Shown: piece by piece, positions 2,088 to 53,456 of the stretch
Numbering within the stretch: position 1 is the stretch's first letter
Layout: each line of letters opens with the position of its first letter
Sequence record: MG592456.1
Length of the DNA stretch: 64,000 bases
Direction: 5' to 3' (one strand)
Notes under the pieces: model-generated
Seen by the model: the letters and a program-made list of their open reading frames with translations, nothing else
What the model was told of the DNA's origin: nothing
The model's database searches: none
Made by a program: the position numbers and the translations under genes

Positions 2088-2327
2088 ATGATAACGATAT
2101 ACACTATCCCTAACTGTGACGGGTGTCGTCACGCTATCGCATTCTGCAAGTTTAAGAAAATCCCCTATGACGTAGTCGAGTTAACTACTCAAGACGCTGT
2201 CGACAAACTTCATGTCAAGCTTGGTCAAAACATGAATGTGCGTGTTCCACTCATCATGCATGAAGATACATTAATTGGTCATCTGCCTGAGTTAAAGAAA
2301 TGGGTTAATGACAACTTGTATAAATAA
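2088..2327 (+). CDS. Glutaredoxin (NrdH/NrdC-like)
   Basis: IYTIPNCDGC (CxxC), VPLI, thioredoxin-fold size. Confidence 0.85.
   Translation: MITIYTIPNCDGCRHAIAFCKFKKIPYDVVELTTQDAVDKLHVKLGQNMNVRVPLIMHEDTLIGHLPELKKWVNDNLYK
2319..2326 (+). promoter_or_regulatory. T4 late promoter TATAAATA
   Basis: Exact consensus upstream of gp24-like gene. Confidence 0.85.
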
Positions 2328-2380: not shown

Positions 2381-3277
2381 ATGACAATTTCTATTGGTAA
2401 TGGCTTACCAGACATTGTTTCTGTTCAAAAGCGTCTATATCCATTGATTTTTACGCATATCGTATCAGAACAACCAACGTCGCAGCCAGTTGCTACTGCG
2501 TTTGGATTTAAGTCACAGACTGAAGCCGACGACGGCAGTGGTTGGAAACTATTAGGGTTCTCACTCGATCGTTGGTTTACTAATGTAAAAGCTAGTAAAT
2601 TAAAAACTGAAATCTCAATCGAAGCAATTCAAGATCTCGCTGCACTTGGTATGGGCGATGACATCATCACAACGAACCTAGCTGATTCAATCGCTGATGA
2701 CATTAACACTGATATCATTACATCGCTCAATGCAATCTCTCAGGTCGGTGCACCCCTGACTCTTTTAGGTGCGACTGATGGCGACAAGTCGTGGGACTTG
2801 TACACTAAAGTGCATGTGGCAGCGGCTGCTCTTGAGAAAGAAACAGGGTGTCATGCATCTTACGCTGTGGCAGGTGGTGACATATTTGGGATGTTAACGG
2901 GGTCGGGGTATGTCTCACAAATCGGTGACAGTAGCATATACGTTTCTGTAGCGGGATTGACCATCGTTCATGATAAGTATTCAACGACTGATTACTTCAC
3001 AGTCGGTGTTAAAAAAGATCTTGGTGAATTTGAACTTTCGAGCTTAGTATTCAGTCCATACAATTTTGATGGTGAATTTGATTCAGGTATTGCATATCAG
3101 CAATTGGCTATTGATCCATCATCATTTAATCCGACTGTGGGTGTTATTGCTCGTTATGCTCTAACTGTTGCCCCTCTAGATTCATCGCAAAAAGGCGCAG
3201 TCGAAATCGACTGGGACAATTTAGGTGCATTAGCCAACAGTTCAAAACTTTCTGTGACATACGACGTTACGGTATAA
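2381..3277 (+). CDS. 24: Capsid vertex protein gp24-like (gp23 family)
   Basis: YPLIFTHIVSEQPTSQP, KLKTEISIEAIQDL, VFSPY, PTVGVIARYAL resemble gp23/24 motifs; late promoter. Confidence 0.7.
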   Translation: MTISIGNGLPDIVSVQKRLYPLIFTHIVSEQPTSQPVATAFGFKSQTEADDGSGWKLLGFSLDRWFTNVKASKLKTEISIEAIQDLAALGMGDDIITTNLADSIADDINTDIITSLNAISQVGAPLTLLGATDGDKSWDLYTKVHVAAAALEKETGCHASYAVAGGDIFGMLTGSGYVSQIGDSSIYVSVAGLTIVHDKYSTTDYFTVGVKKDLGEFELSSLVFSPYNFDGEFDSGIAYQQLAIDPSSFNPTVGVIARYALTVAPLDSSQKGAVEIDWDNLGALANSSKLSVTYDVTV

Positions 3278-3286
3278 GGTTATATT

Positions 3287-3802
3287 ATGAATAATCATTA
3301 TGTAGATAATAAAGCTCTGTACGCATCGCTATGCGAATGGAAAGATGAAATGAAGAAAGACTCCGACGTATCTGTGCCCGTGCCGGACCTAGTGGCAGTA
3401 AGCATCATGAAGATTAGCGAGAATTTAACTCGTCGTTACAACTTCAGCGGTTACACGCTAACGTGGAAAGAAGAAATGGTCGGGGATGCGATTGAGCACT
3501 GCTTGCGCTACATCAAAAATTTCGATACTGATAAATATAACAATCCACACGCTTATATCACCCGGATTTGTTTTAATGCGTTTGTGCAACGTATTAAGAA
3601 AGAACGTAAAGATACTGCGATTAAATATAAAGTATTCTTGTGCGATTCGTCAAATTACATCACTGAGGGCGAAGAGGAAGCGGATTTTGAGTTTCTTCAA
3701 CAAATGCTTGAGCGAGTCAACTCTTACGAATCTGGCAAAGCACCGAAGGTCTCTGCTGAAGATAAGAACGAGCCACTTAACTTACAAAAATTTTACGATT
3801 AA
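3287..3802 (+). CDS. 55: Late-transcription sigma factor gp55
   Basis: HYVDNKALY, NFSGYT..WKEEMVGDAIE, NPHAYIT..CFNAFVQRIKKE. Confidence 0.95.
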   Translation: MNNHYVDNKALYASLCEWKDEMKKDSDVSVPVPDLVAVSIMKISENLTRRYNFSGYTLTWKEEMVGDAIEHCLRYIKNFDTDKYNNPHAYITRICFNAFVQRIKKERKDTAIKYKVFLCDSSNYITEGEEEADFEFLQQMLERVNSYESGKAPKVSAEDKNEPLNLQKFYD

Positions 3803-3811
3803 GGAATAAAC

Positions 3812-5254
3812 ATGATAGGTAACTTTGACTCATTTTTGAGTGCAAATCGCCGCGGAACGCAGGGTGGTAAAATCTACCCTAAATTCGGTCAGGTTGTCGT
3901 TGAGCTGGGTACTAAAGCCACAGCGTTCAGCAAAGACAAAGGCGCTGAAACAACAATACGTATGATGGAAAAGGCGAACGAGCTAAAATCTATCATGCAA
4001 ACTAAATTAATTGAAGACGCTAACGTAAATCACTCGGAATTTGATATCAATTTGAGTGAAAATGTCAGCGTTGCCAACTTACTAATGGAACTTGAATTCG
4101 CTGCAATGCCAGCGCATGAATTGTATCAAGTTAAGTCGTTTATCATGTGTCATGAATCTCGTTTGCCGAGTATCGTGATTAAAGGTGGTGAACTGTCAGA
4201 CATTGTTAACGAAGCTGTGAAGCTTGGCTATAAGAAGAAAGACATTCACGTCGTATTCCCTATGGATGAAATGATTATTGACCTTGCTGACAGTGACAAG
4301 TTGATTATTGAATCACTGTCGTTTGACGGTCAGTCGGCGTCGGATGTACTATCAATGGCGAAAGATATCGAGCTTGGTGATGTTTACGTAACTATGAATC
4401 GTGTGGCATCAGATGCGAAATTATCTGAAATGACTGAGCTGAAGATCAAATCTGGCACGAAAGAGCTTAGTATCGGTTTATTGAATCGTCATATCATGGA
4501 CAATTTCATTGTTAAGCCAGCCGCGGATGTTTCTTACGCTCGTGTGATTGAGAGTCACACAGATCGCCCTATGCTTGAAGGCTTCAAAGCTTACGATTGG
4601 CGTCGTAACATGACCCTGCTTGAATCGAAGCAAAATATCTTTGCGGGTTATCAAACAAAGGCACCGATGACTGCTACATCATGGAGAAATCTAGTTGATG
4701 TGCAAGAATCGTATTTCACCAATGGTTGGAAATTAAAGCATAACAACAAAAGTATCGTTCTTACAAATGCTGAAAACGCTATGAGAGGCGGTCAAGTGTG
4801 TGAAGAATATCGAGTTGAGCTGTCAGAATCTGGCTATCCGATTCTTGACGTAGTTGCAATGCTTGAGTCAGCCGGAACTTCGATGACTTGTGCTGAATTT
4901 GCCAAAGCCATGATGAAACTTGATGGTCTAGTCACGCCAGAACGCCAGACAATCACTGCATTTGTGACGGAGTCTGCAAGTAATCGCGTGTACCACCCAC
5001 AGGCAATGCTTGGGTTGCGTCCCGTTGTTGAAGCCGTGGATGACGTCAATTCATTAATTAAAGCTATTTCGAATGGTCAATTTAGTCAATTCAGAGTGAA
5101 TCAATCTTTTGCAGACACTATGTTAGACCAAGAAACTTTAAATTCAATGATGGAACACATCGTATCTGATGGTATTGATGTTAGCGTCGATGGCGATATG
5201 GTTGAGTTCAAAGTAAACGAAACCAAATACGTGATTAAGACCGACATTAAGTAG
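3812..5254 (+). CDS. Hypothetical 480-aa protein, possible prohead core or internal protein
   Basis: Long ORF with RBS; many [ILVM]-x-E-[SAG] motifs. Confidence 0.6.
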   Translation: MIGNFDSFLSANRRGTQGGKIYPKFGQVVVELGTKATAFSKDKGAETTIRMMEKANELKSIMQTKLIEDANVNHSEFDINLSENVSVANLLMELEFAAMPAHELYQVKSFIMCHESRLPSIVIKGGELSDIVNEAVKLGYKKKDIHVVFPMDEMIIDLADSDKLIIESLSFDGQSASDVLSMAKDIELGDVYVTMNRVASDAKLSEMTELKIKSGTKELSIGLLNRHIMDNFIVKPAADVSYARVIESHTDRPMLEGFKAYDWRRNMTLLESKQNIFAGYQTKAPMTATSWRNLVDVQESYFTNGWKLKHNNKSIVLTNAENAMRGGQVCEEYRVELSESGYPILDVVAMLESAGTSMTCAEFAKAMMKLDGLVTPERQTITAFVTESASNRVYHPQAMLGLRPVVEAVDDVNSLIKAISNGQFSQFRVNQSFADTMLDQETLNSMMEHIVSDGIDVSVDGDMVEFKVNETKYVIKTDIK

Positions 5255-5261
5255 GAAGCAC

Positions 5262-5984
5262 ATGAAAACTTTTAACACTTTTTTCGAGACGCTGCATGAA
5301 GCTGCGGCTGAAGTAGAGGGGCAATACCCAGCCCCATTTGACTATAAATTTCACAAATACACAGCCGATGCTAAATTCACATCCGCTGCAACTAGTATTA
5401 ACAGCAAAGTAAACGCCGGTTTCTTATCTGCCGTTGCTTCGCACTTCAAACCCGGCTCTACGGTCATCGACTACGGTGCGGGTAAATACGGTCGTGTTGC
5501 TCAAGCATTGCGTGAGCAGGGATTCAGAGTGTTTGCGTATGATCCGTATAACGGCAAAGCAGGCGCTGATGGGTGGACTGACGTGTCGAAGACGTTACCG
5601 AATGGTATTAAATTCGATCATGGATTTAGTTCATTTGTGTTAAACGTTGTGGATTACGACGTTCAGGCTCACATTGTTAAAGAGCTTGAGAGTTACGTTA
5701 CCGGTACTAAAATTCACATCGTACGTGGTTCGGACATTGTAGACACGCTGGTCAAAGTTGTTACTGGCAAATCAAAGAACCCGTATGTTATGGGTTACGT
5801 TGAATTGCATTATCCTGACTTGTTGCAGAAAATTGTAAACGGTCACGGTACAAAAGCTGATGCGAAATGGCTTGCTCAACATGGTGTTGCGACGAAATTA
5901 GATTCGTTCCAACGCTGGCCTGACTTATCGGAGATGGGCTATAAACGCTCTGGCCCCGCTGCGTCGAGCATGTGGATCAAGTAA
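5262..5984 (+). CDS. Class I SAM-dependent methyltransferase-like protein with capsid-targeting-like N-terminus
   Basis: VIDYGAGKYG motif I, VFAYDPY, FSSFVLNVV; N-terminus MKTFNTFFETLHEA. Confidence 0.75.
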   Translation: MKTFNTFFETLHEAAAEVEGQYPAPFDYKFHKYTADAKFTSAATSINSKVNAGFLSAVASHFKPGSTVIDYGAGKYGRVAQALREQGFRVFAYDPYNGKAGADGWTDVSKTLPNGIKFDHGFSSFVLNVVDYDVQAHIVKELESYVTGTKIHIVRGSDIVDTLVKVVTGKSKNPYVMGYVELHYPDLLQKIVNGHGTKADAKWLAQHGVATKLDSFQRWPDLSEMGYKRSGPAASSMWIK

Positions 5985-5988
5985 AAAC

Positions 5989-6017
5989 AAAGGGTTGACT
6001 TCGGTCAGCCCTTTTTT
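5989..6017 (+). terminator. Intrinsic terminator (UUCG loop)
   Basis: AAAGGGTTGAC-TTCG-GTCAGCCC-T6-GTGTCTG. Confidence 0.9.
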
Positions 6018-6040: not shown

Positions 6041-6069
6041 TTGTGTTCATGCTCGATAAAGCCTATTAT
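6041..6069 (+). promoter_or_regulatory. sigma70 early promoter
   Basis: TTGTGT-17-TATTAT, then TATCGAAAC leader. Confidence 0.65.
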
Positions 6070-6098
6070 AGCTCTATCGAAACGAATTGGAGAATATT

Positions 6099-7959: not shown

Positions 7960-8449
7960 ACTCGCACTCAACGCAGTGTATCGAGCACAGAAGACAGATA
8001 AGCCAATTCTATACTTTGATATGGATAACGTTCTTATCGACTTTCAGAGTGGCATTGACGCACTCTCTGTTAGCGAACGACAACGTTATGCTGGCAAATT
8101 AGATGAAGTTCCGGGGATTTTTGCTCATATGCGCCCAATGAATGGTGCAGTTGCTGCATTTCATTTGTTGAACAAGCACTTTGATTGCTATATACTGTCT
8201 ACTGCGCCATGGGACAATCCGGGAGCATGGCAAGATAAACGCAACACTGTTGAAATGTTCTTCGGTGAAGCAGCACGCAAGAAACTCATTCTATCTCATA
8301 ATAAGAATCTGAACTTTGGTCATTATCTTATTGACGATCGAACCGCTAATGGTGCAGGTGAGTTCATGGGTGAACACATACATTTCGGGACTGACAGATT
8401 CCCAGATTGGCCATCTGTAGTTTCATATCTTTTGAAGGAAATAAAATGA
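7946..8449 (+). CDS. 5'(3')-deoxyribonucleotidase, HAD family
   Basis: ILYFDMDNVL, YILSTAPW, YLIDDR. Confidence 0.85.
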   Translation: MNIVKLALNAVYRAQKTDKPILYFDMDNVLIDFQSGIDALSVSERQRYAGKLDEVPGIFAHMRPMNGAVAAFHLLNKHFDCYILSTAPWDNPGAWQDKRNTVEMFFGEAARKKLILSHNKNLNFGHYLIDDRTANGAGEFMGEHIHFGTDRFPDWPSVVSYLLKEIK

Positions 8450-9486
8450 AAGTTGCATTTATAGGCGACACACATATCGGCATTCGTGATGACGATCTGT
8501 GGATTCAAGCATATCAGAAAAAATTCTTCGAGTTCTGCTTTGCGGAAATGGAAGCGCGTGGTGTTGATAAGATAGTACAGACGGGCGATTGGTTTGATGT
8601 TCGTCGTGGTCTATCTCAAGACACATTGAAATTTCAACGTGAAGTCTTGAACCCGATGTTTAACAAGTATGAAACTCATGTACTCGTCGGGAATCATGAT
8701 GCTCACTTGAGAGAATCATTGACCCCTAATTCATGTACTGAAGTTTTAGGTCAGCATGGCTACTATGTCATCCATCAATCGCCATCGACGGTCGACTTTG
8801 ATGGTGTTAAACTCGACATCATCCCATGGATTTGTAAAGAAAACGAAGCTGAGGTTGCCGAGTTCATTGAAAATTCAACTAGTGAATACTGTGTAGGTCA
8901 CTTTGAATTAAATGGATTTGAGTTCCATAAGGGTCAGAAAGCGACGGGTTGTCTTGATTCTGGCTTCTTGAAGGGTTACAAGCAAGTTTGGTCTGGTCAC
9001 TTCCACACTCAATCTGATGCTGGTAATATTCGCTATCTCGGTACACCGTATACGCTAACGCTCGGTGATGCTGATGACAAACGTGGATTCTGGATTTTCG
9101 ACACTGAAACTCATGAAATGGAGTTTATTGAAAACCCTGATTGTTGGCACACCAAGATGTATTTTGATGCTGCTACGTTTGACACGAAGACAATTGATTC
9201 ATACGCTAATAAAAACGTTAAAATCATTGTGGAGCGTCGTTCGTGTGATACTCGAAAGATCTCTTTTGATGTAGTCGAAGATCGAATTGCAAGTATTGCT
9301 CATGCTTGTCAAACTTTAGACGAACTGGACATTATCTCAGATGTGTCGAATGATGTCAAATCGATCAAAGATATTAATGAATACGTGGCTGACTATGCGG
9401 ATACGCTTGAAGAGTCGACTGAAGTTCGCGAAAAGATTAAAGTGATCTTTGCTGCCCTACGTAATGAAGCCTTGGAGAACGCATAA
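8446..9486 (+). CDS. 47: Recombination nuclease subunit gp47 (Mre11/SbcD-like)
   Basis: GDTHIG, GDWFD, GNHD, GHFH; start re-assigned to ATG 8446. Confidence 0.95.
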   Translation: MKVAFIGDTHIGIRDDDLWIQAYQKKFFEFCFAEMEARGVDKIVQTGDWFDVRRGLSQDTLKFQREVLNPMFNKYETHVLVGNHDAHLRESLTPNSCTEVLGQHGYYVIHQSPSTVDFDGVKLDIIPWICKENEAEVAEFIENSTSEYCVGHFELNGFEFHKGQKATGCLDSGFLKGYKQVWSGHFHTQSDAGNIRYLGTPYTLTLGDADDKRGFWIFDTETHEMEFIENPDCWHTKMYFDAATFDTKTIDSYANKNVKIIVERRSCDTRKISFDVVEDRIASIAHACQTLDELDIISDVSNDVKSIKDINEYVADYADTLEESTEVREKIKVIFAALRNEALENA

Positions 9487-21943: not shown

Positions 21944-22585
21944 ATGGAATTAATGACAATTGGTATCATCGCTGGGGCTGTATTCGTAATATTAATCGGC
22001 ATTGCAATCTATCACAGTACAAAACTCCCGAATCAATCTGCCGCTGAAAAAGCGAAAGACCTAGCAGAAGTCAAACAGCGAAAGATTGCTGAAGACGCTA
22101 TTCGTCGTATGCCGACGATTCCGCCAGAGGCGATCCGAACAACTCAGCCGCATAATCGACATGCCGCCCCGCGCACTCGACGTAACAATCGAGATCAGGG
22201 TCACCATGCTAGTCGTACCAATGATATTGACGCGGTCGACGTAATGGTAGCAGGTGTTGTAGTCAATAGCTTGCTTGGTGACGATGAAATCGCAGATGAT
22301 TGGGAGCCAACTGGGTATCGCCAAGACTCAGTTGATGAACGAGTCGAGCCTGTTTGGGAGCCAACTCTATCTGGCGAAACTCCTGTTGCTGACCCTACCC
22401 CAGTTTATGAAGCGCCTGAGCCAACTCGTTCTTCATATCGTGAGCCTGAGCCGACTTACGAAGCGCCTACTTACACGCCAGAGCCGAGTTCAAGTTACAG
22501 CTCTAGTTCTAGTTACAGCTCTAGTTCAGACTACAGCTCAAGCAGTGACTACAGCTCTAGCTCTAGTTCAAGTAGCTGCGATTAA
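21944..22585 (+). CDS. Membrane-anchored protein with Pro/Glu-rich region and Ser-rich tail
   Basis: N-terminal TM; SSSYSSSSSYSSSSDYSSSSDYSSSSSSSSCD. Confidence 0.75.
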   Translation: MELMTIGIIAGAVFVILIGIAIYHSTKLPNQSAAEKAKDLAEVKQRKIAEDAIRRMPTIPPEAIRTTQPHNRHAAPRTRRNNRDQGHHASRTNDIDAVDVMVAGVVVNSLLGDDEIADDWEPTGYRQDSVDERVEPVWEPTLSGETPVADPTPVYEAPEPTRSSYREPEPTYEAPTYTPEPSSSYSSSSSYSSSSDYSSSSDYSSSSSSSSCD

Positions 22586-23480: not shown

Positions 23481-24953
23481 ATGAAAAAAAGATTTTCAGA
23501 ATTTTACGCTGAAGTTGAAGAAACTCAGATATTCGAAGTGTCAGATCGGTCAAACGTCCCCATCACATGGCACGATCCTTTGAATGCTACATTTAGTGCA
23601 GGTGGCGAGAAAGTCGCCGTTTCATTGGATGACGATCAAGATGGTGAGTTTACCATTATGTTCTCCAACAATGGGTCATATTCCCAATCCGGTCAAAGCA
23701 AAGGCGCCGCCGCGATATTCTCGGGGGTTTTGACTACTCTGCGTGAATTCACCGAAACATATGAAGAAGAAGTGGGTCTGAAGCCATATCAATACACGTT
23801 TTCAGCCGCATATGAGTTGCCGATGGGACATCCACACAAAAGGGACATCATTTCCCTGTCAGTTGGAAATTCAACGCTCAGTCTCGATGAAAAGAAAGCA
23901 GTATTCAAAGATTTGATATCCAGACCGATGTTGTATTACGCACTGTCATTGACGTTTGGTGCTTCGTATGGTTACAAGACTGACATGAACGACATCTATT
24001 TACTGAAACTAGCGGGTGGTGCTAATGATTTTCGTTCAGTTCGTCGCAATGTAAACAAATCGATTGCTGACCTGTCTGAAGACCAAATGGACCGCCTGTT
24101 TGTTAGTATGAAGGGTTCAGTTCATTTCAAATTGACGAATGCAAGTACAAGCAGTAGCGACTACGACGGTGCTTATATGGATAGTGAACTCAGCCTTGAA
24201 GACAATATCGACGATGCGAGTGATGAACAGCTAGAAGATTGGATCAACGCTGGACGCGAAGCCGATATCATTGAATATGCTGGCTGGCAAACACTTGTTA
24301 GGATTGCTGGCATGGAATATATGCATAGTAATTTAATAACCCATTCTGACAAAGACGTCCGTGACGCAGTAATCCAATCAGATCCCGACATGGTAGATGA
24401 ACTGATTGATTCAGAACACCCAGAAATGCGTGCTCATGCTGCTGAGTACGGTGCGGGTATTGAGAAACTAATCACTGATGACGAAGAAGAAGTTCGTGAC
24501 GCTGCGTGGGACTACGCAACTGAGAACTATGACTTCGATCAACGCATACCGCTGATGAAGTACGTAATTCGTAACGGCGATGAAGAACAAATCGACGCGA
24601 TGGCTGAGTGGGTGATCGACTACGGTCATTGGCAAGAGCGTTTATTCCTTGCAGAAGAAGGTCGAAACATAGAGAAATTGATGATTGACGCATCGGAAGA
24701 AGTTCGTCAAGGTGCTATCAACTCGGTGTTTAGTCAAATGGGGTTTGAGGGCGAAGAAGCCGCTAGCTATATTTCTGATGTGTCGGCTAATACCGACTAC
24801 AGTCAGGAAAACTTTGAATACGCGATGGAAGGCAACTTCGGGTCGGACTTCGAAGATAAGCTGCTTGAACTTGCACGAGACGAAATGCTTGACGTTAGCA
24901 AGTACTCACCCGACGAAGATGAAGACGAAGATGAAGACGACATATATTCGTAA
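23481..24953 (+). CDS. Acidic protein: CTS-like N-terminus, paralogous domain, HEAT-like C-terminal repeats (start re-assigned)
   Basis: MKKRFSEFYAE; repeats such as LIDSEHPEMRAHA, LITDDEEEVRDAA, LMIDASEEVRQGA; AGGA RBS. Confidence 0.75.
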   Translation: MKKRFSEFYAEVEETQIFEVSDRSNVPITWHDPLNATFSAGGEKVAVSLDDDQDGEFTIMFSNNGSYSQSGQSKGAAAIFSGVLTTLREFTETYEEEVGLKPYQYTFSAAYELPMGHPHKRDIISLSVGNSTLSLDEKKAVFKDLISRPMLYYALSLTFGASYGYKTDMNDIYLLKLAGGANDFRSVRRNVNKSIADLSEDQMDRLFVSMKGSVHFKLTNASTSSSDYDGAYMDSELSLEDNIDDASDEQLEDWINAGREADIIEYAGWQTLVRIAGMEYMHSNLITHSDKDVRDAVIQSDPDMVDELIDSEHPEMRAHAAEYGAGIEKLITDDEEEVRDAAWDYATENYDFDQRIPLMKYVIRNGDEEQIDAMAEWVIDYGHWQERLFLAEEGRNIEKLMIDASEEVRQGAINSVFSQMGFEGEEAASYISDVSANTDYSQENFEYAMEGNFGSDFEDKLLELARDEMLDVSKYSPDEDEDEDEDDIYS

Positions 24954-30665: not shown

Positions 30666-31613
30666 ATGAAATTTTCAACATACACTAATGAAACACAGTC
30701 GCTAGACGAAGCGATGGACAGAGCAGCACATTTTGTGTGGGATCAGAGTAGTAATCGATGGTGGCTAGCAAACTTCCGAGTCAGTGGGGTTGAGTATCAT
30801 ACTGTAGTGATTCGCTCTGAATACCAACACGCAAGTGGTTATCAATATGAAAACGCGGAAGTGTCGTTTCAAGTCAGAGACGCTACCGGTACGTGGTCTC
30901 ATAAACTGGTAAAGGGAAACTCCGCTGATGCAATGACAGTACTTGCTACTGTACTCGCAAGCACATTTGATTATATCGATACGAATAAACCAGAACGTGT
31001 TGAGTACACCGCATATCAAGATGCTGACCCAGCCGACGCCAAAAAGCGCTTGAGATTGTATGAGACGATGACGAGGCGTGGTATCAAAGGCACTGATTAT
31101 GAATATACTCGCAATGGAAATAAATTTGTCGTAGTACGTAAAGGCTTCGCGCAGCGTGTTGCTGATGCAGTTGGTAGCAGTATAGAGCCAGTTGGGATGC
31201 GAACGACGGGAAGATCAGGCATATCGATTAACATTGCGCAGGCGAACGCCGCAGCATTTGCGACCGCGTTTGACGCCTTAGATAGCAAGAAATCGGGCCG
31301 TCTGGCGCAAGGTAGAGCCGCAGTTGGTGCGGGTTCATACGGACAACTACAGGCTGAATTACTCACGCCCCGTGGCGAGCGAGTACCAATGACAGACGAG
31401 TTTAGCTGGAAACAGGTATTAGTACATCCAATATGGACGTTTGACGACGACACTCCTGACACGAAAGACCCGTATTATATGGTGGGTGAATTTCAAGGCA
31501 CGTACGTTGTTCTCGATGATGGCCTTTTAAGAGTGTTCAATGATGAGACGTTTTTCATTAGATATATAACTCCCGGGAGTGGTGCTAAACTACGTAATAG
31601 GAACGAGATATGA
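30666..31613 (+). CDS. CTS-bearing paralogous protein
   Basis: MKFSTYTNETQSLDEA; LVKGNSADAMTVLATV...KKRLRLY. Confidence 0.75.
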   Translation: MKFSTYTNETQSLDEAMDRAAHFVWDQSSNRWWLANFRVSGVEYHTVVIRSEYQHASGYQYENAEVSFQVRDATGTWSHKLVKGNSADAMTVLATVLASTFDYIDTNKPERVEYTAYQDADPADAKKRLRLYETMTRRGIKGTDYEYTRNGNKFVVVRKGFAQRVADAVGSSIEPVGMRTTGRSGISINIAQANAAAFATAFDALDSKKSGRLAQGRAAVGAGSYGQLQAELLTPRGERVPMTDEFSWKQVLVHPIWTFDDDTPDTKDPYYMVGEFQGTYVVLDDGLLRVFNDETFFIRYITPGSGAKLRNRNEI

Positions 31614-31909
31614 GACAAGTCATCGAATTGCTCAACAAGACAAAACTATCCTACACTGACATCAGCGCATTTGGTCAGCCTTGCATATACGTACACGCAG
31701 GGGTGGAGACTATTCTGCGTGTAACATACAACGAGGACTGTTTTTCATTTTATGATTATCGAAGTCAGTATCTATACGAAGAACAGTCGGTTGACGATCT
31801 TGAACTACACTTAAAATCAATTGACGTAGGTCTACCGAACGATATCGTTCTAAACCTGAACGGAAATATTGACAGAGACACCATTCCTCATGGGGCATTT
31901 TTAAAATGA
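31610..31909 (+). CDS. Hypothetical protein
   Basis: ATGA overlaps on both sides. Confidence 0.65.
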   Translation: MRQVIELLNKTKLSYTDISAFGQPCIYVHAGVETILRVTYNEDCFSFYDYRSQYLYEEQSVDDLELHLKSIDVGLPNDIVLNLNGNIDRDTIPHGAFLK

Positions 31910-32745
31910 AATTTTCAGAATATCAAGAACTCAATGAAGCATTTGATCGAGCAGCACCTGACTTGGTGATTAAACGCAATAGAAGCAAATTCAGTGTTGA
32001 TGGTCAAGAATACGTGGTTAGTACTTCTATTGGGTTGTCACGTACGGCCATGTCGGTTGCATTTTCGGCTATTGACGAAGACGGAACTCCCAGCTATGAG
32101 CTAGTTAAAGGTGATGCCCGCACAGCCATGACTGTGTTCGCCACCGTGATTAAAGTCGTACAGCATCACATTGAGAAATACGACTTAATTCGCGTACATT
32201 TTTCGGCATATGCTGACGACATTACATCCGACGCGAAGAAACGAAAGCGACTGTACACGTCATTGACCAAACGTTATGCCGAACAAATGGGATGGGAATG
32301 GGAAGAAGTCGGCGGGGATTTCAGCATCAAAGCTCCAGTGGTCAAAGAAGAGCCAGCGGGATATTCTACAAGTTGGGGTACTGAGTCTCTAGATTTGTTC
32401 GAAGTGAATGCAGCAGCGGTGATTAAAGCAGCGAATGATATTAACATGCGATGGGATTTGTATGATGGCGCGGTTTTGGAAATTATCACTGCAAGTGGCA
32501 GAGCCAGATTGTCTACTGGCTCGATTAATAGCGTAGACTCATGGGCAGACGCATTTGCGCCCCTTATATGGGGCCCGGGGGAGTTTGAGGGAGTGGACGA
32601 CATGCAGAGAATTGCAAGAATTGCAGGTAAGATCTGGGTCCAAGGTGATATGGAAGTGACAATCTATAAAAATATCGAGCACTTCGAGCGTGACGCTGAA
32701 AATCCGGTGTCATCTGAGACAAAATTGATATTAGACCTGATGTAA
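31906..32745 (+). CDS. CTS-bearing paralogous protein
   Basis: MKFSEYQELNEA; LVKGDARTAMTVFATV...KKRKRLY. Confidence 0.75.
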   Translation: MKFSEYQELNEAFDRAAPDLVIKRNRSKFSVDGQEYVVSTSIGLSRTAMSVAFSAIDEDGTPSYELVKGDARTAMTVFATVIKVVQHHIEKYDLIRVHFSAYADDITSDAKKRKRLYTSLTKRYAEQMGWEWEEVGGDFSIKAPVVKEEPAGYSTSWGTESLDLFEVNAAAVIKAANDINMRWDLYDGAVLEIITASGRARLSTGSINSVDSWADAFAPLIWGPGEFEGVDDMQRIARIAGKIWVQGDMEVTIYKNIEHFERDAENPVSSETKLILDLM

Positions 32746-53210: not shown

Positions 53211-53456
53211 ATGAAAGGTTTTAACGATTATCACAAGAAAGGCGAAGTCAAGCTTCAAGAAACTGAACAAGAGTTTCATGAACGTGTAGTCAAGCATCGT
53301 CAAGTGGACAGCAAACGCTATCCAAAAGTACAAGGTCTTGAGGGCCCGTACACTGACTTGAATGGCAAAGTGTACTACTATGATCCACGCGAGGGGCTTT
53401 ATTATGACCCAGACACGGACATTTACTTGAAAGCTAAAGACTTGCGCTTACCATAA
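53211..53456 (+). CDS. Small late protein with OCRE-like aromatic repeat (start re-assigned)
   Basis: MKGFNDY; YYYDPREGLYYDPDTDIY; GGAG RBS. Confidence 0.75.
   Translation: MKGFNDYHKKGEVKLQETEQEFHERVVKHRQVDSKRYPKVQGLEGPYTDLNGKVYYYDPREGLYYDPDTDIYLKAKDLRLP

Follow-up and report, generated by a model that had tools for sequence, protein, structure and literature searches.

The gene NVP1081O_091 of Vibrio phage 1.081.O on balance probably encodes an internal head protein with an enzyme as cargo, which is made late, targeted to the head by an N-terminal leader and active after ejection into the next host. Head cargo directed by a capsid targeting sequence (CTS) is of a known kind, and a methyltransferase as the cargo would be what is new here. 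The known head cargo of T4 comprises three small internal proteins and the enzyme Alt. Proteins that are carried in the head act before any phage gene is read and so decide the first seconds of the infection.

The window analyzed here is a stretch of 64 kb, bases 62001-126000 of MG592456.1, the record of Vibrio phage 1.081.O._10N.286.52.C2; positions below refer to it unless another record is named. The phage is marine, T4-like and KVP40-like (Schizotequatrovirus, Straboviridae). The record header gives Shewanella as the host, though the phage is named "Vibrio phage."

Gene, conservation and operon context

NVP1081O_091 lies at 5262-5984 on the plus strand and encodes 240 amino acids (phrog_14016, E = 8e-66) from an ATG start with a putative ribosome-binding site, GGAAG, 5-9 nt upstream, and it is annotated in MG592456.1 as "S-adenosyl-L-methionine-dependent methyltransferase." Orthologues are found in 49 records of KVP40-like cultured Vibrio phages and a metagenome search gave relatives in 65 protein clusters, and it is therefore not a chance open reading frame. 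It is a core gene, present in 18 of 18 genomes, and the dN/dS ratio of 0.018 indicates strong purifying selection.

The proposal of the sequence-only reading that the gene ends a late operon is sound at the level of sequence, with a conserved late box, short gaps and a strong terminator. A T4-type late promoter box, TATAAATA (2319-2326, plus strand), precedes the ATG of the first gene by 62 nt. The three copies of this string in the 64-kb window are no more than chance gives; its position, at -62 to -67, is common to KVP40, F86 and 6E35.1a, and no further copy precedes the methyltransferase gene. The genes that follow, all on the plus strand, encode a gene-24-like head vertex protein (2381-3277; Pfam Gp23, E = 2.7e-43; labeled gp24 in KVP40), the late sigma factor gp55 (3287-3802; phrog_234, E = 6.6e-57) and a core ORF of 480 amino acids (3812-5254; phrog_14490), with intergenic gaps of 7-10 nt down to the methyltransferase gene and an intrinsic terminator with an 11-bp stem and a T run (5989-6014, plus strand) at the end of the operon. 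The order of nrdH, gene 24, gene 55, the ORF of about 480 amino acids and the methyltransferase gene is constant across 49 phage genomes, the whole operon from late promoter to terminator is the same in four phages, and a hairpin stands 3' of the methyltransferase gene in all five of 1081, KVP40, F86, 6E35.1a and D479. Since gp55 is itself encoded within the operon, some earlier transcription must also cross it.

Several features of the neighboring genes can be mentioned in their own right. The gene-24-like protein has only 298 amino acids and matches the C-terminal two-thirds of the Gp23 model, with a possible internal deletion according to the KVP40 annotation, and its gene adjoins that of gp55, apart from the head gene cluster. 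The 480-amino-acid ORF has no recognizable domain and is listed as "Defense?" in Table S8 of PMC12028318; its N terminus, MIGNFDSFLSA, is leader-like, without the Glu that is kept in KVP40 and 6E35.1a (FLSE/N, where the slash, here and below, marks a putative cleavage point). A partnership between this ORF and the methyltransferase-fold protein was considered and rejected, since the 485-amino-acid protein upstream of a distant homologue (one checked, L039) is unrelated and the orthologue of the ORF is not in particles. Just past the terminator, the string TATTATAGCT(C/A)(T/C)ATCGAAACGA (6055-6085, plus strand) is conserved in 1081, KVP40, F86 and 6E35.1a; together with the terminator it resembles a PeSL-like terminator-promoter unit, in which it would supply the promoter of the next gene.

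N-terminal leader and particle proteomics

The first 13 residues, MKTFNTFFETLHE (5262-5300, plus strand), form the predicted leader, which reads MKTFNTFFE/TLHE/A with its putative cleavage points, and residues 14-31 (5301-5354, plus strand) form a linker that is absent from short orthologues of the KVP40 type. Residues 1-31 are modeled as a helix (residues 2-18) followed by coil, with a pLDDT of 52-55 in the leader and 52-65 in the linker. The T4 capsid targeting sequence is MKTYQEFIAE and receives a single cut by the prohead protease (PMC8442874); M1, K2, T3, an aromatic residue at position 4 and F7 are common to it and the leader. MG592456.1 encodes both a T4-type gp21 (PF03420, E = 7e-95) and a T4-type gp23 (PF07068, E = 6.6e-121).

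Two sites in the leader match the gp21 type (hydrophobic-x-Glu) by sequence, FFE9/T10 and LHE13/A14. The cleavage at A14 that was first proposed stands in that LHE13/A14 is a candidate, and one of the same L-x-E/A form as the maturation site of the phage's own gp23 (GLTE/AVVNGDHG, at the T4-equivalent position), but it does not stand as the only choice: the second candidate, FFE9/T10, is kept as F-M-E/S or F-V-E/S in F86, P0003 and P0004, the three closest long-form orthologues. Short orthologues without the linker begin with MKQFCNFLAE/VQK (KVP40) and MAKSLNDFLTE/VQK (6E35.1a). The model of the 6E35.1a orthologue has a pLDDT of 51-58 for residues 1-20 and above 90 for the core, and the leader is placed confidently in neither the long-form nor the short-form model. 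A putative cut of the 6E351A orthologue after LTE11 would give the neo-N-terminus VQKYSSAATSIR, and an intact leader would give the tryptic peptide SLNDFLTEVQK.

An N-terminal helix of the form M-K-x-hydrophobic-x-x-hydrophobic-x-E is common family-wide, with examples such as MKIKELIE/S and MRISEILCE/S in distant members; the close relative P0013 has no leader. Among the viral genomes with helix-bearing members, three complete ones (IMG/VR contigs, 190-358 kb) gave no match to a T4-type gp21 or gp23, with positive controls that worked, so the helix arose before the T4 context. Judged from these sequences, the helix may owe its present role to co-option, or it may make up no more than a part of the targeting signal.

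Published particle proteomics exist for the sister phage 6E351A (PMC12028318, Tables S4 and S8). In that phage, the counterpart of NVP1081O_091 is VP6E351A_0103 (MYOV011v1_p0106, QZI87378.1), at 52.5% identity, and the packaging data are those of this orthologue and not of 1.081.O. It was detected with counts of 31 and 79 in replicates 1 and 2 (PMC12028318, Table S4), and the corresponding counts were 122 and 233 for the Alt-like protein, 90 and 145 for the gene-24-like protein, 47 and 58 for the tail tube and 17 and 28 for the prohead protease. The mean count of 55 places it at rank 22 of the 94 detected proteins. In that study, the protein is labeled hypothetical and is not discussed, the capsid targeting sequence is not mentioned, and remarks are made on Acb1, NARP2 and FolE in the particles (PMC12028318).

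A search for the leader pattern gave a similar picture. The ORFs of 6E35.1a were scanned for M-x(1-5)-hydrophobic-x-x-aromatic, followed by hydrophobic-x-Glu-small ending at residues 6-20, and the matches were looked up in Table S8 by coordinate. There were 17 matches at annotated starts, with one ambiguous (0391, for which the annotated start is 10 codons upstream), and 14 of the 17 proteins were detected in particles compared to 94 of about 442 overall (one-sided Fisher test, p = 7e-8; p = 1e-5 with the two marginal detections counted as undetected); these p values are indicative only because the pattern was fixed after some of the matches had already been seen. Besides gp21 and the methyltransferase orthologue, the detected proteins, with counts for the two replicates, are 0134 (58/109), 0154 (37/51), 0242 (15/23), 0174 (12/17), 0188 (7/21), 0192 (6/13), 0357 (18/4), 0391 (12/13), 0394 (6/10) and the Acb1-like 0408 (5/9), and the marginal ones are 0358 and 0067. 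A helicase, a 53-amino-acid ORF and 0236 bear the pattern and are absent from the particle list. Two detected proteins of 8-10 kDa have leaders very near that of T4 (MKTLQEFLAE/A in 0394 and MKTLAEFLGE/A in 0391), and the leader of 0174, MKKFNEFAKELEE followed by AA, resembles MKTFNTFFETLHE followed by AA in NVP1081O_091. The enrichment and the near-T4 leaders together indicate that a T4-type targeting system appears to be in use in the genus, and NVP1081O_091, by its sequence, appears to bear the mark of it.

The earlier idea that the enzyme is packaged is thus well supported through the orthologue, by its counts, by the enrichment of leader-bearing proteins and by its undetected neighbors: gp55 and the 478-amino-acid ORF VP6E351A_0102, encoded in the same operon, are absent from the 94-protein list. 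Since the counterpart is found in 6E351A virions, NVP1081O_091 probably travels into the next host together with the DNA. The particles were PEG-precipitated and not gradient-purified, and spanins, a transporter and metabolic enzymes were also detected, at lower counts. Such crude preparations, together with the similar helix in distant members from genomes without T4-type head genes, would fit an ordinary cytoplasmic late enzyme whose helix is its native first helix and whose mass spectrometry signal is carry-over. We find this unlikely, as the mean count of the orthologue is roughly threefold that of the most strongly detected obvious enzyme contaminant (mean, 19.5), the operon partners did not carry over with it, most leader-bearing proteins were detected and the leader is undocked from the fold in both models.

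A protein that is packaged or capsid-bound could also act in the producing cell, where it would methylate the DNA, an internal protein or some part of the head during assembly, and have no role after ejection. The operon in common with a gene-24-like vertex protein would suit such a function, as would core status and strong purifying selection, in contrast to the fast change of the internal proteins of T4. It is nevertheless improbable, since the T4 proteins with such a leader, IPI and Alt, are ejected, and to our knowledge no methylated head protein is known in the KVP40-like group. The DNA of 6E351A also speaks against it, since this DNA carries dPreQ1 and no methylated form has been reported (PMC12028318).

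Methyltransferase fold and candidate substrates

The motifs that were quoted in the sequence-only reading are all found in the protein (MKTFNTFFETLHEA at residues 1-14, DYGAG at 70, AYDPY at 92 and FVLNV at 125), and its assignment of a putative SAM-binding domain is supported by alignment and modeling. Residues 32-240 (5355-5981, plus strand) are predicted to form a class I SAM-methyltransferase-fold core based on the alignment and on Foldseek and VIA matches. Motif I (D70, G72, A73 and G74) and the beta-2 acid D94 are invariant in the 46 aligned sequences, as are T44, S45, R78, F118, V126-V130, N128, H152, R155, G208, Q217 and R218, and six of the invariant residues, D70, G72, A73, G74, R78 and D94, make up the signature that class I SAM enzymes show in motif I and beta-2. 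The AlphaFold model has a pLDDT above 90 from about residue 50, structure comparison found a Rossmann-like alpha/beta fold in it, and the strong structural matches (Foldseek and VIA) are all SAM methyltransferases, the nearest being small-molecule, sugar and peptide methyltransferases. No curated family model scored above its threshold (Methyltransf_23, 22.8 bits with a cut-off of 27 and E = 8e-5, over residues 54-103 only); the relatives scored 17-26 bits with the same model, and a sequence search of the PDB gave marginal matches only, including NAD(P) Rossmann proteins.

A close resemblance is to the Methyltransf_23/11/25 type (TylM1, CalS10, CypM, UbiG and TehB), with which the protein has in common the Rossmann-like fold, the motif I stretch V-I-D-Y-G-A-G, the acidic end of beta-2 and a beta-4 stretch of F-D-x-x-F-S-S-x-V-L-N-V-V. 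It differs from this type in that identity is 8-18%, the Pfam scores are below threshold, no substrate can be transferred and the family has invariant motifs of its own, GGTSI/SAATSI, HI(T/V)R and FQR. The homology of the family core with fused relatives of 388 amino acids begins at about residue 32, and in relatives of 385-391 amino acids the methyltransferase core sits behind another domain of about 175 residues, for which we found no Pfam match, no internal duplication and low-scoring atlas leads only. From sequence and model, we regard NVP1081O_091 as a methyltransferase-fold protein, with catalysis as its likely activity.

The sequence-only reading had named incoming DNA, host RNA or a defense protein as targets, and it had likened the domain to a methyltransferase family associated with DNA phosphorothioation. 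A DNA methyltransferase that shields the incoming DNA from restriction or phosphorothioate-dependent defense would have a precedent for a packaged antirestriction protein in P1 DarB (PMC9024508), and there is a weak match to the Dnd-associated family TIGR04096 (E = 0.018). This likeness turned out to be confined to a generic stretch around SAM motifs I-II, residues 58-97, which matches profile positions 23-61, about 40 of 478, and scores 13.8 bits (cut-off, 150). No dnd genes lie near NVP1081O_091, and we reject membership in that family. The motif IV forms (D/N/S)PP(Y/F/W) and the PCQ motif are found in 0 of 65 family members and NVP1081O_091 contains no cysteine, which makes a canonical DNA methylase unlikely. 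There is also no target-recognition domain, and the nearest structures are those of enzymes acting on small molecules, sugars and peptides. We therefore reject DNA methylation as the main reading and consider it highly unlikely that incoming DNA is the target.

A more specific DNA-related activity, the methylation of dPreQ1 to mdPreQ1, was considered because several structural neighbors belong to the amine N-methyltransferases and dPreQ1 is found in these phages. A dPreQ1 methylase is already known from these phages, namely DpdM, a member of DUF3109 in which cysteines are conserved (PMC10516641). It is unrelated to NVP1081O_091, which has a Rossmann fold and no cysteines, in place of the DUF3109 fold and the cysteine-rich metal sites of DpdM. 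As the activity belongs to DpdM and the dPreQ1 of 6E351A is unmethylated, this candidate was rejected.

What remains would be a target other than DNA, and by analogy with Alt we infer a protein, an RNA or a nucleotide-like small molecule that would be methylated as infection begins. The sequence conservation suggests an anionic substrate, given three invariant arginines together with H152, N128 and Q217. The core status and the strong purifying selection point to a conserved target and not to a strain-specific defense protein. On a metagenome contig (L041), a fused relative at 8001-9167 of that contig is located among genes for RNA ligase 1 (Rnl1), a Thg1-like protein, a SpoU methylase and R2K ATP-grasp proteins, and this neighborhood is a possible hint of an RNA substrate.

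That the fold has been kept in a protein that is not a methyltransferase, such as a protein that binds SAM or nucleotides or an internal protein with a structural role only, would agree with the Pfam score below the cut-off and with the weak matches to NAD(P) Rossmann proteins, but this is very improbable when D70, G72, G74 and D94 are invariant, the invariant polar set of N128, H152, R155, Q217 and R218 resembles an active site and every strong structural match is a SAM methyltransferase.

Known systems and further candidate cargo

For an internal head protein with enzyme cargo, the course of events, from the targeting function of the leader and its cleavage to the internal location, the ejection, the catalysis and the target, would be as follows. 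The methyltransferase-fold protein would be synthesized late from the gene-24 operon, and its amphipathic leader would direct it to the scaffolding core of the prohead, as the T4 CTS directs IPI-III. The gp21 prohead protease would probably cut the leader off after E9 or E13, and the mildly basic mature protein of about 25 kDa would be kept in the DNA-filled head in tens of copies, roughly at the level of Alt and the portal. At the next infection, it would probably exit with the DNA and, with SAM from the host, methylate a conserved target while no phage gene is yet expressed, and a protein, RNA or anionic small molecule would be likelier as the target than DNA.

The internal proteins of T4 that carry a CTS are among the closest known systems. 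They share with NVP1081O_091 an amphipathic leader of about 10-13 residues of the form M-K-T-aromatic-x-x-F that ends in hydrophobic-x-Glu followed by a small residue, T4-type gp21, gp22 and gp23 in the same phage, presence in virions (here through the orthologue) and a basic mature part with a pI of about 9. They are expressed late, as is predicted for NVP1081O_091 from the late box and the operon layout. In contrast to these small, nonenzymatic, DNA-associated proteins, the cargo here has an enzyme fold of 25 kDa. Where their genes are hypervariable, this one belongs to the core set and is strongly constrained by purifying selection, and targeting and cleavage are predictions from the leader sequence.

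The comparison with T4 Alt concerns an enzyme in a T4-type head that acts at the start of infection, as we propose here by analogy; the fold is that of a SAM methyltransferase here and of an ADP-ribosyltransferase in Alt, and there is no sequence relation between the two. The Alt homologue of 1.081.O is encoded about 5 kb upstream of NVP1081O_091 on the other strand.

P1 DarB has methyltransferase and helicase motifs. This packaged 250-kDa antirestriction protein has an N-terminal capsid signal and is believed to be delivered into the cell along with the DNA (PMC9024508), and a large cargo directed to the head by an N-terminal signal is also what the sequence predicts here. It differs from NVP1081O_091 in belonging to an unrelated phage lineage, in its signal sequence, in being ten times larger and in acting on DNA restriction, whereas a DNA target is unlikely for our protein. 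The sequence-only reading recognized no characterized precedent, but packaged enzymes do have precedents in T4 Alt and in P1 DarB (PMC9024508).

A wider reading, which we offer only tentatively, is that schizotequatroviruses employ T4-type capsid targeting to load enzymes and effectors of at least 10 families into the head, and that the methyltransferase is the first injected phage methyltransferase effector. The cargo proposed in this wider reading includes the Alt-like ADP-ribosyltransferase, the Acb1-like phosphodiesterase, the armadillo-like acidic protein, the phrog_6387 paralogues and small basic proteins. If true, RNA polymerase, the translation apparatus, tRNA or an immune signaling molecule could be methylated within seconds of DNA entry, by the product of a gene that is core across a genus of broad-host-range marine Vibrio phages. 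By the simple leader rule, the same phages should encode a dozen other cargo proteins, and this opens to direct test the question of what T4-type phages bring in along with the DNA and what it acts against; for 6E351A, particle proteomics, host panels and genetics are already available. The leader is also a possible packaging tag for phage engineering, if it functions as in T4.

Several other genes can be noted from the window and its surroundings. The N terminus of the Alt-like ADP-ribosyltransferase NVP1081O_084 is encoded at 1-357 on the minus strand, with the gene continuing upstream of the window; it starts with MIGFQQLNE/S, a leader of the same type, and its 6E351A orthologue is among the most abundant nonstructural particle proteins. 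NVP1081O_117 (23481-24953, plus strand) is a very acidic, armadillo-like protein of 490 amino acids (phrog_13195) that starts with MKKRFSEFYAE/V, and its KVP40 counterpart starts with MKLFTEFYQE/V; with its orthologue VP6E351A_0134 in particles, it is a second candidate for head cargo. Two phrog_6387 paralogues of 315 and 279 amino acids (30666-31613 and 31906-32745, plus strand) start with MKFSTYTNETQSLDE/A and MKFSEYQELNE/AFDR, respectively. Three 6E351A members of that family (0094, 0154 and 0242) are found in particles, and the family may account for the principal internal proteins in this genus.

An 81-amino-acid protein of phrog_13298 (53211-53456, plus strand) starts with MKGFNDYHKKGEVKLQE/T, and its orthologue VP6E351A_0192 is found in particles. 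The Acb1-like anti-CBASS phosphodiesterase is encoded at 160850-161305 of MW824377.1 (6E35.1a) and at 205643-206098 of MG592456.1, outside the window, with the leaders MKLSTFLE/S in 6E35.1a and MNLSEYNE/T in 1081; such a leader would explain its presence in 6E351A particles. Finally, a protein of 213 amino acids (21944-22585, plus strand) has an N-terminal membrane helix and an unusual C-terminal tail of nearly all Ser, with Tyr and Asp (SSSYSSSSSYSSSSDYSSSSDYSSSSSSSSCD).
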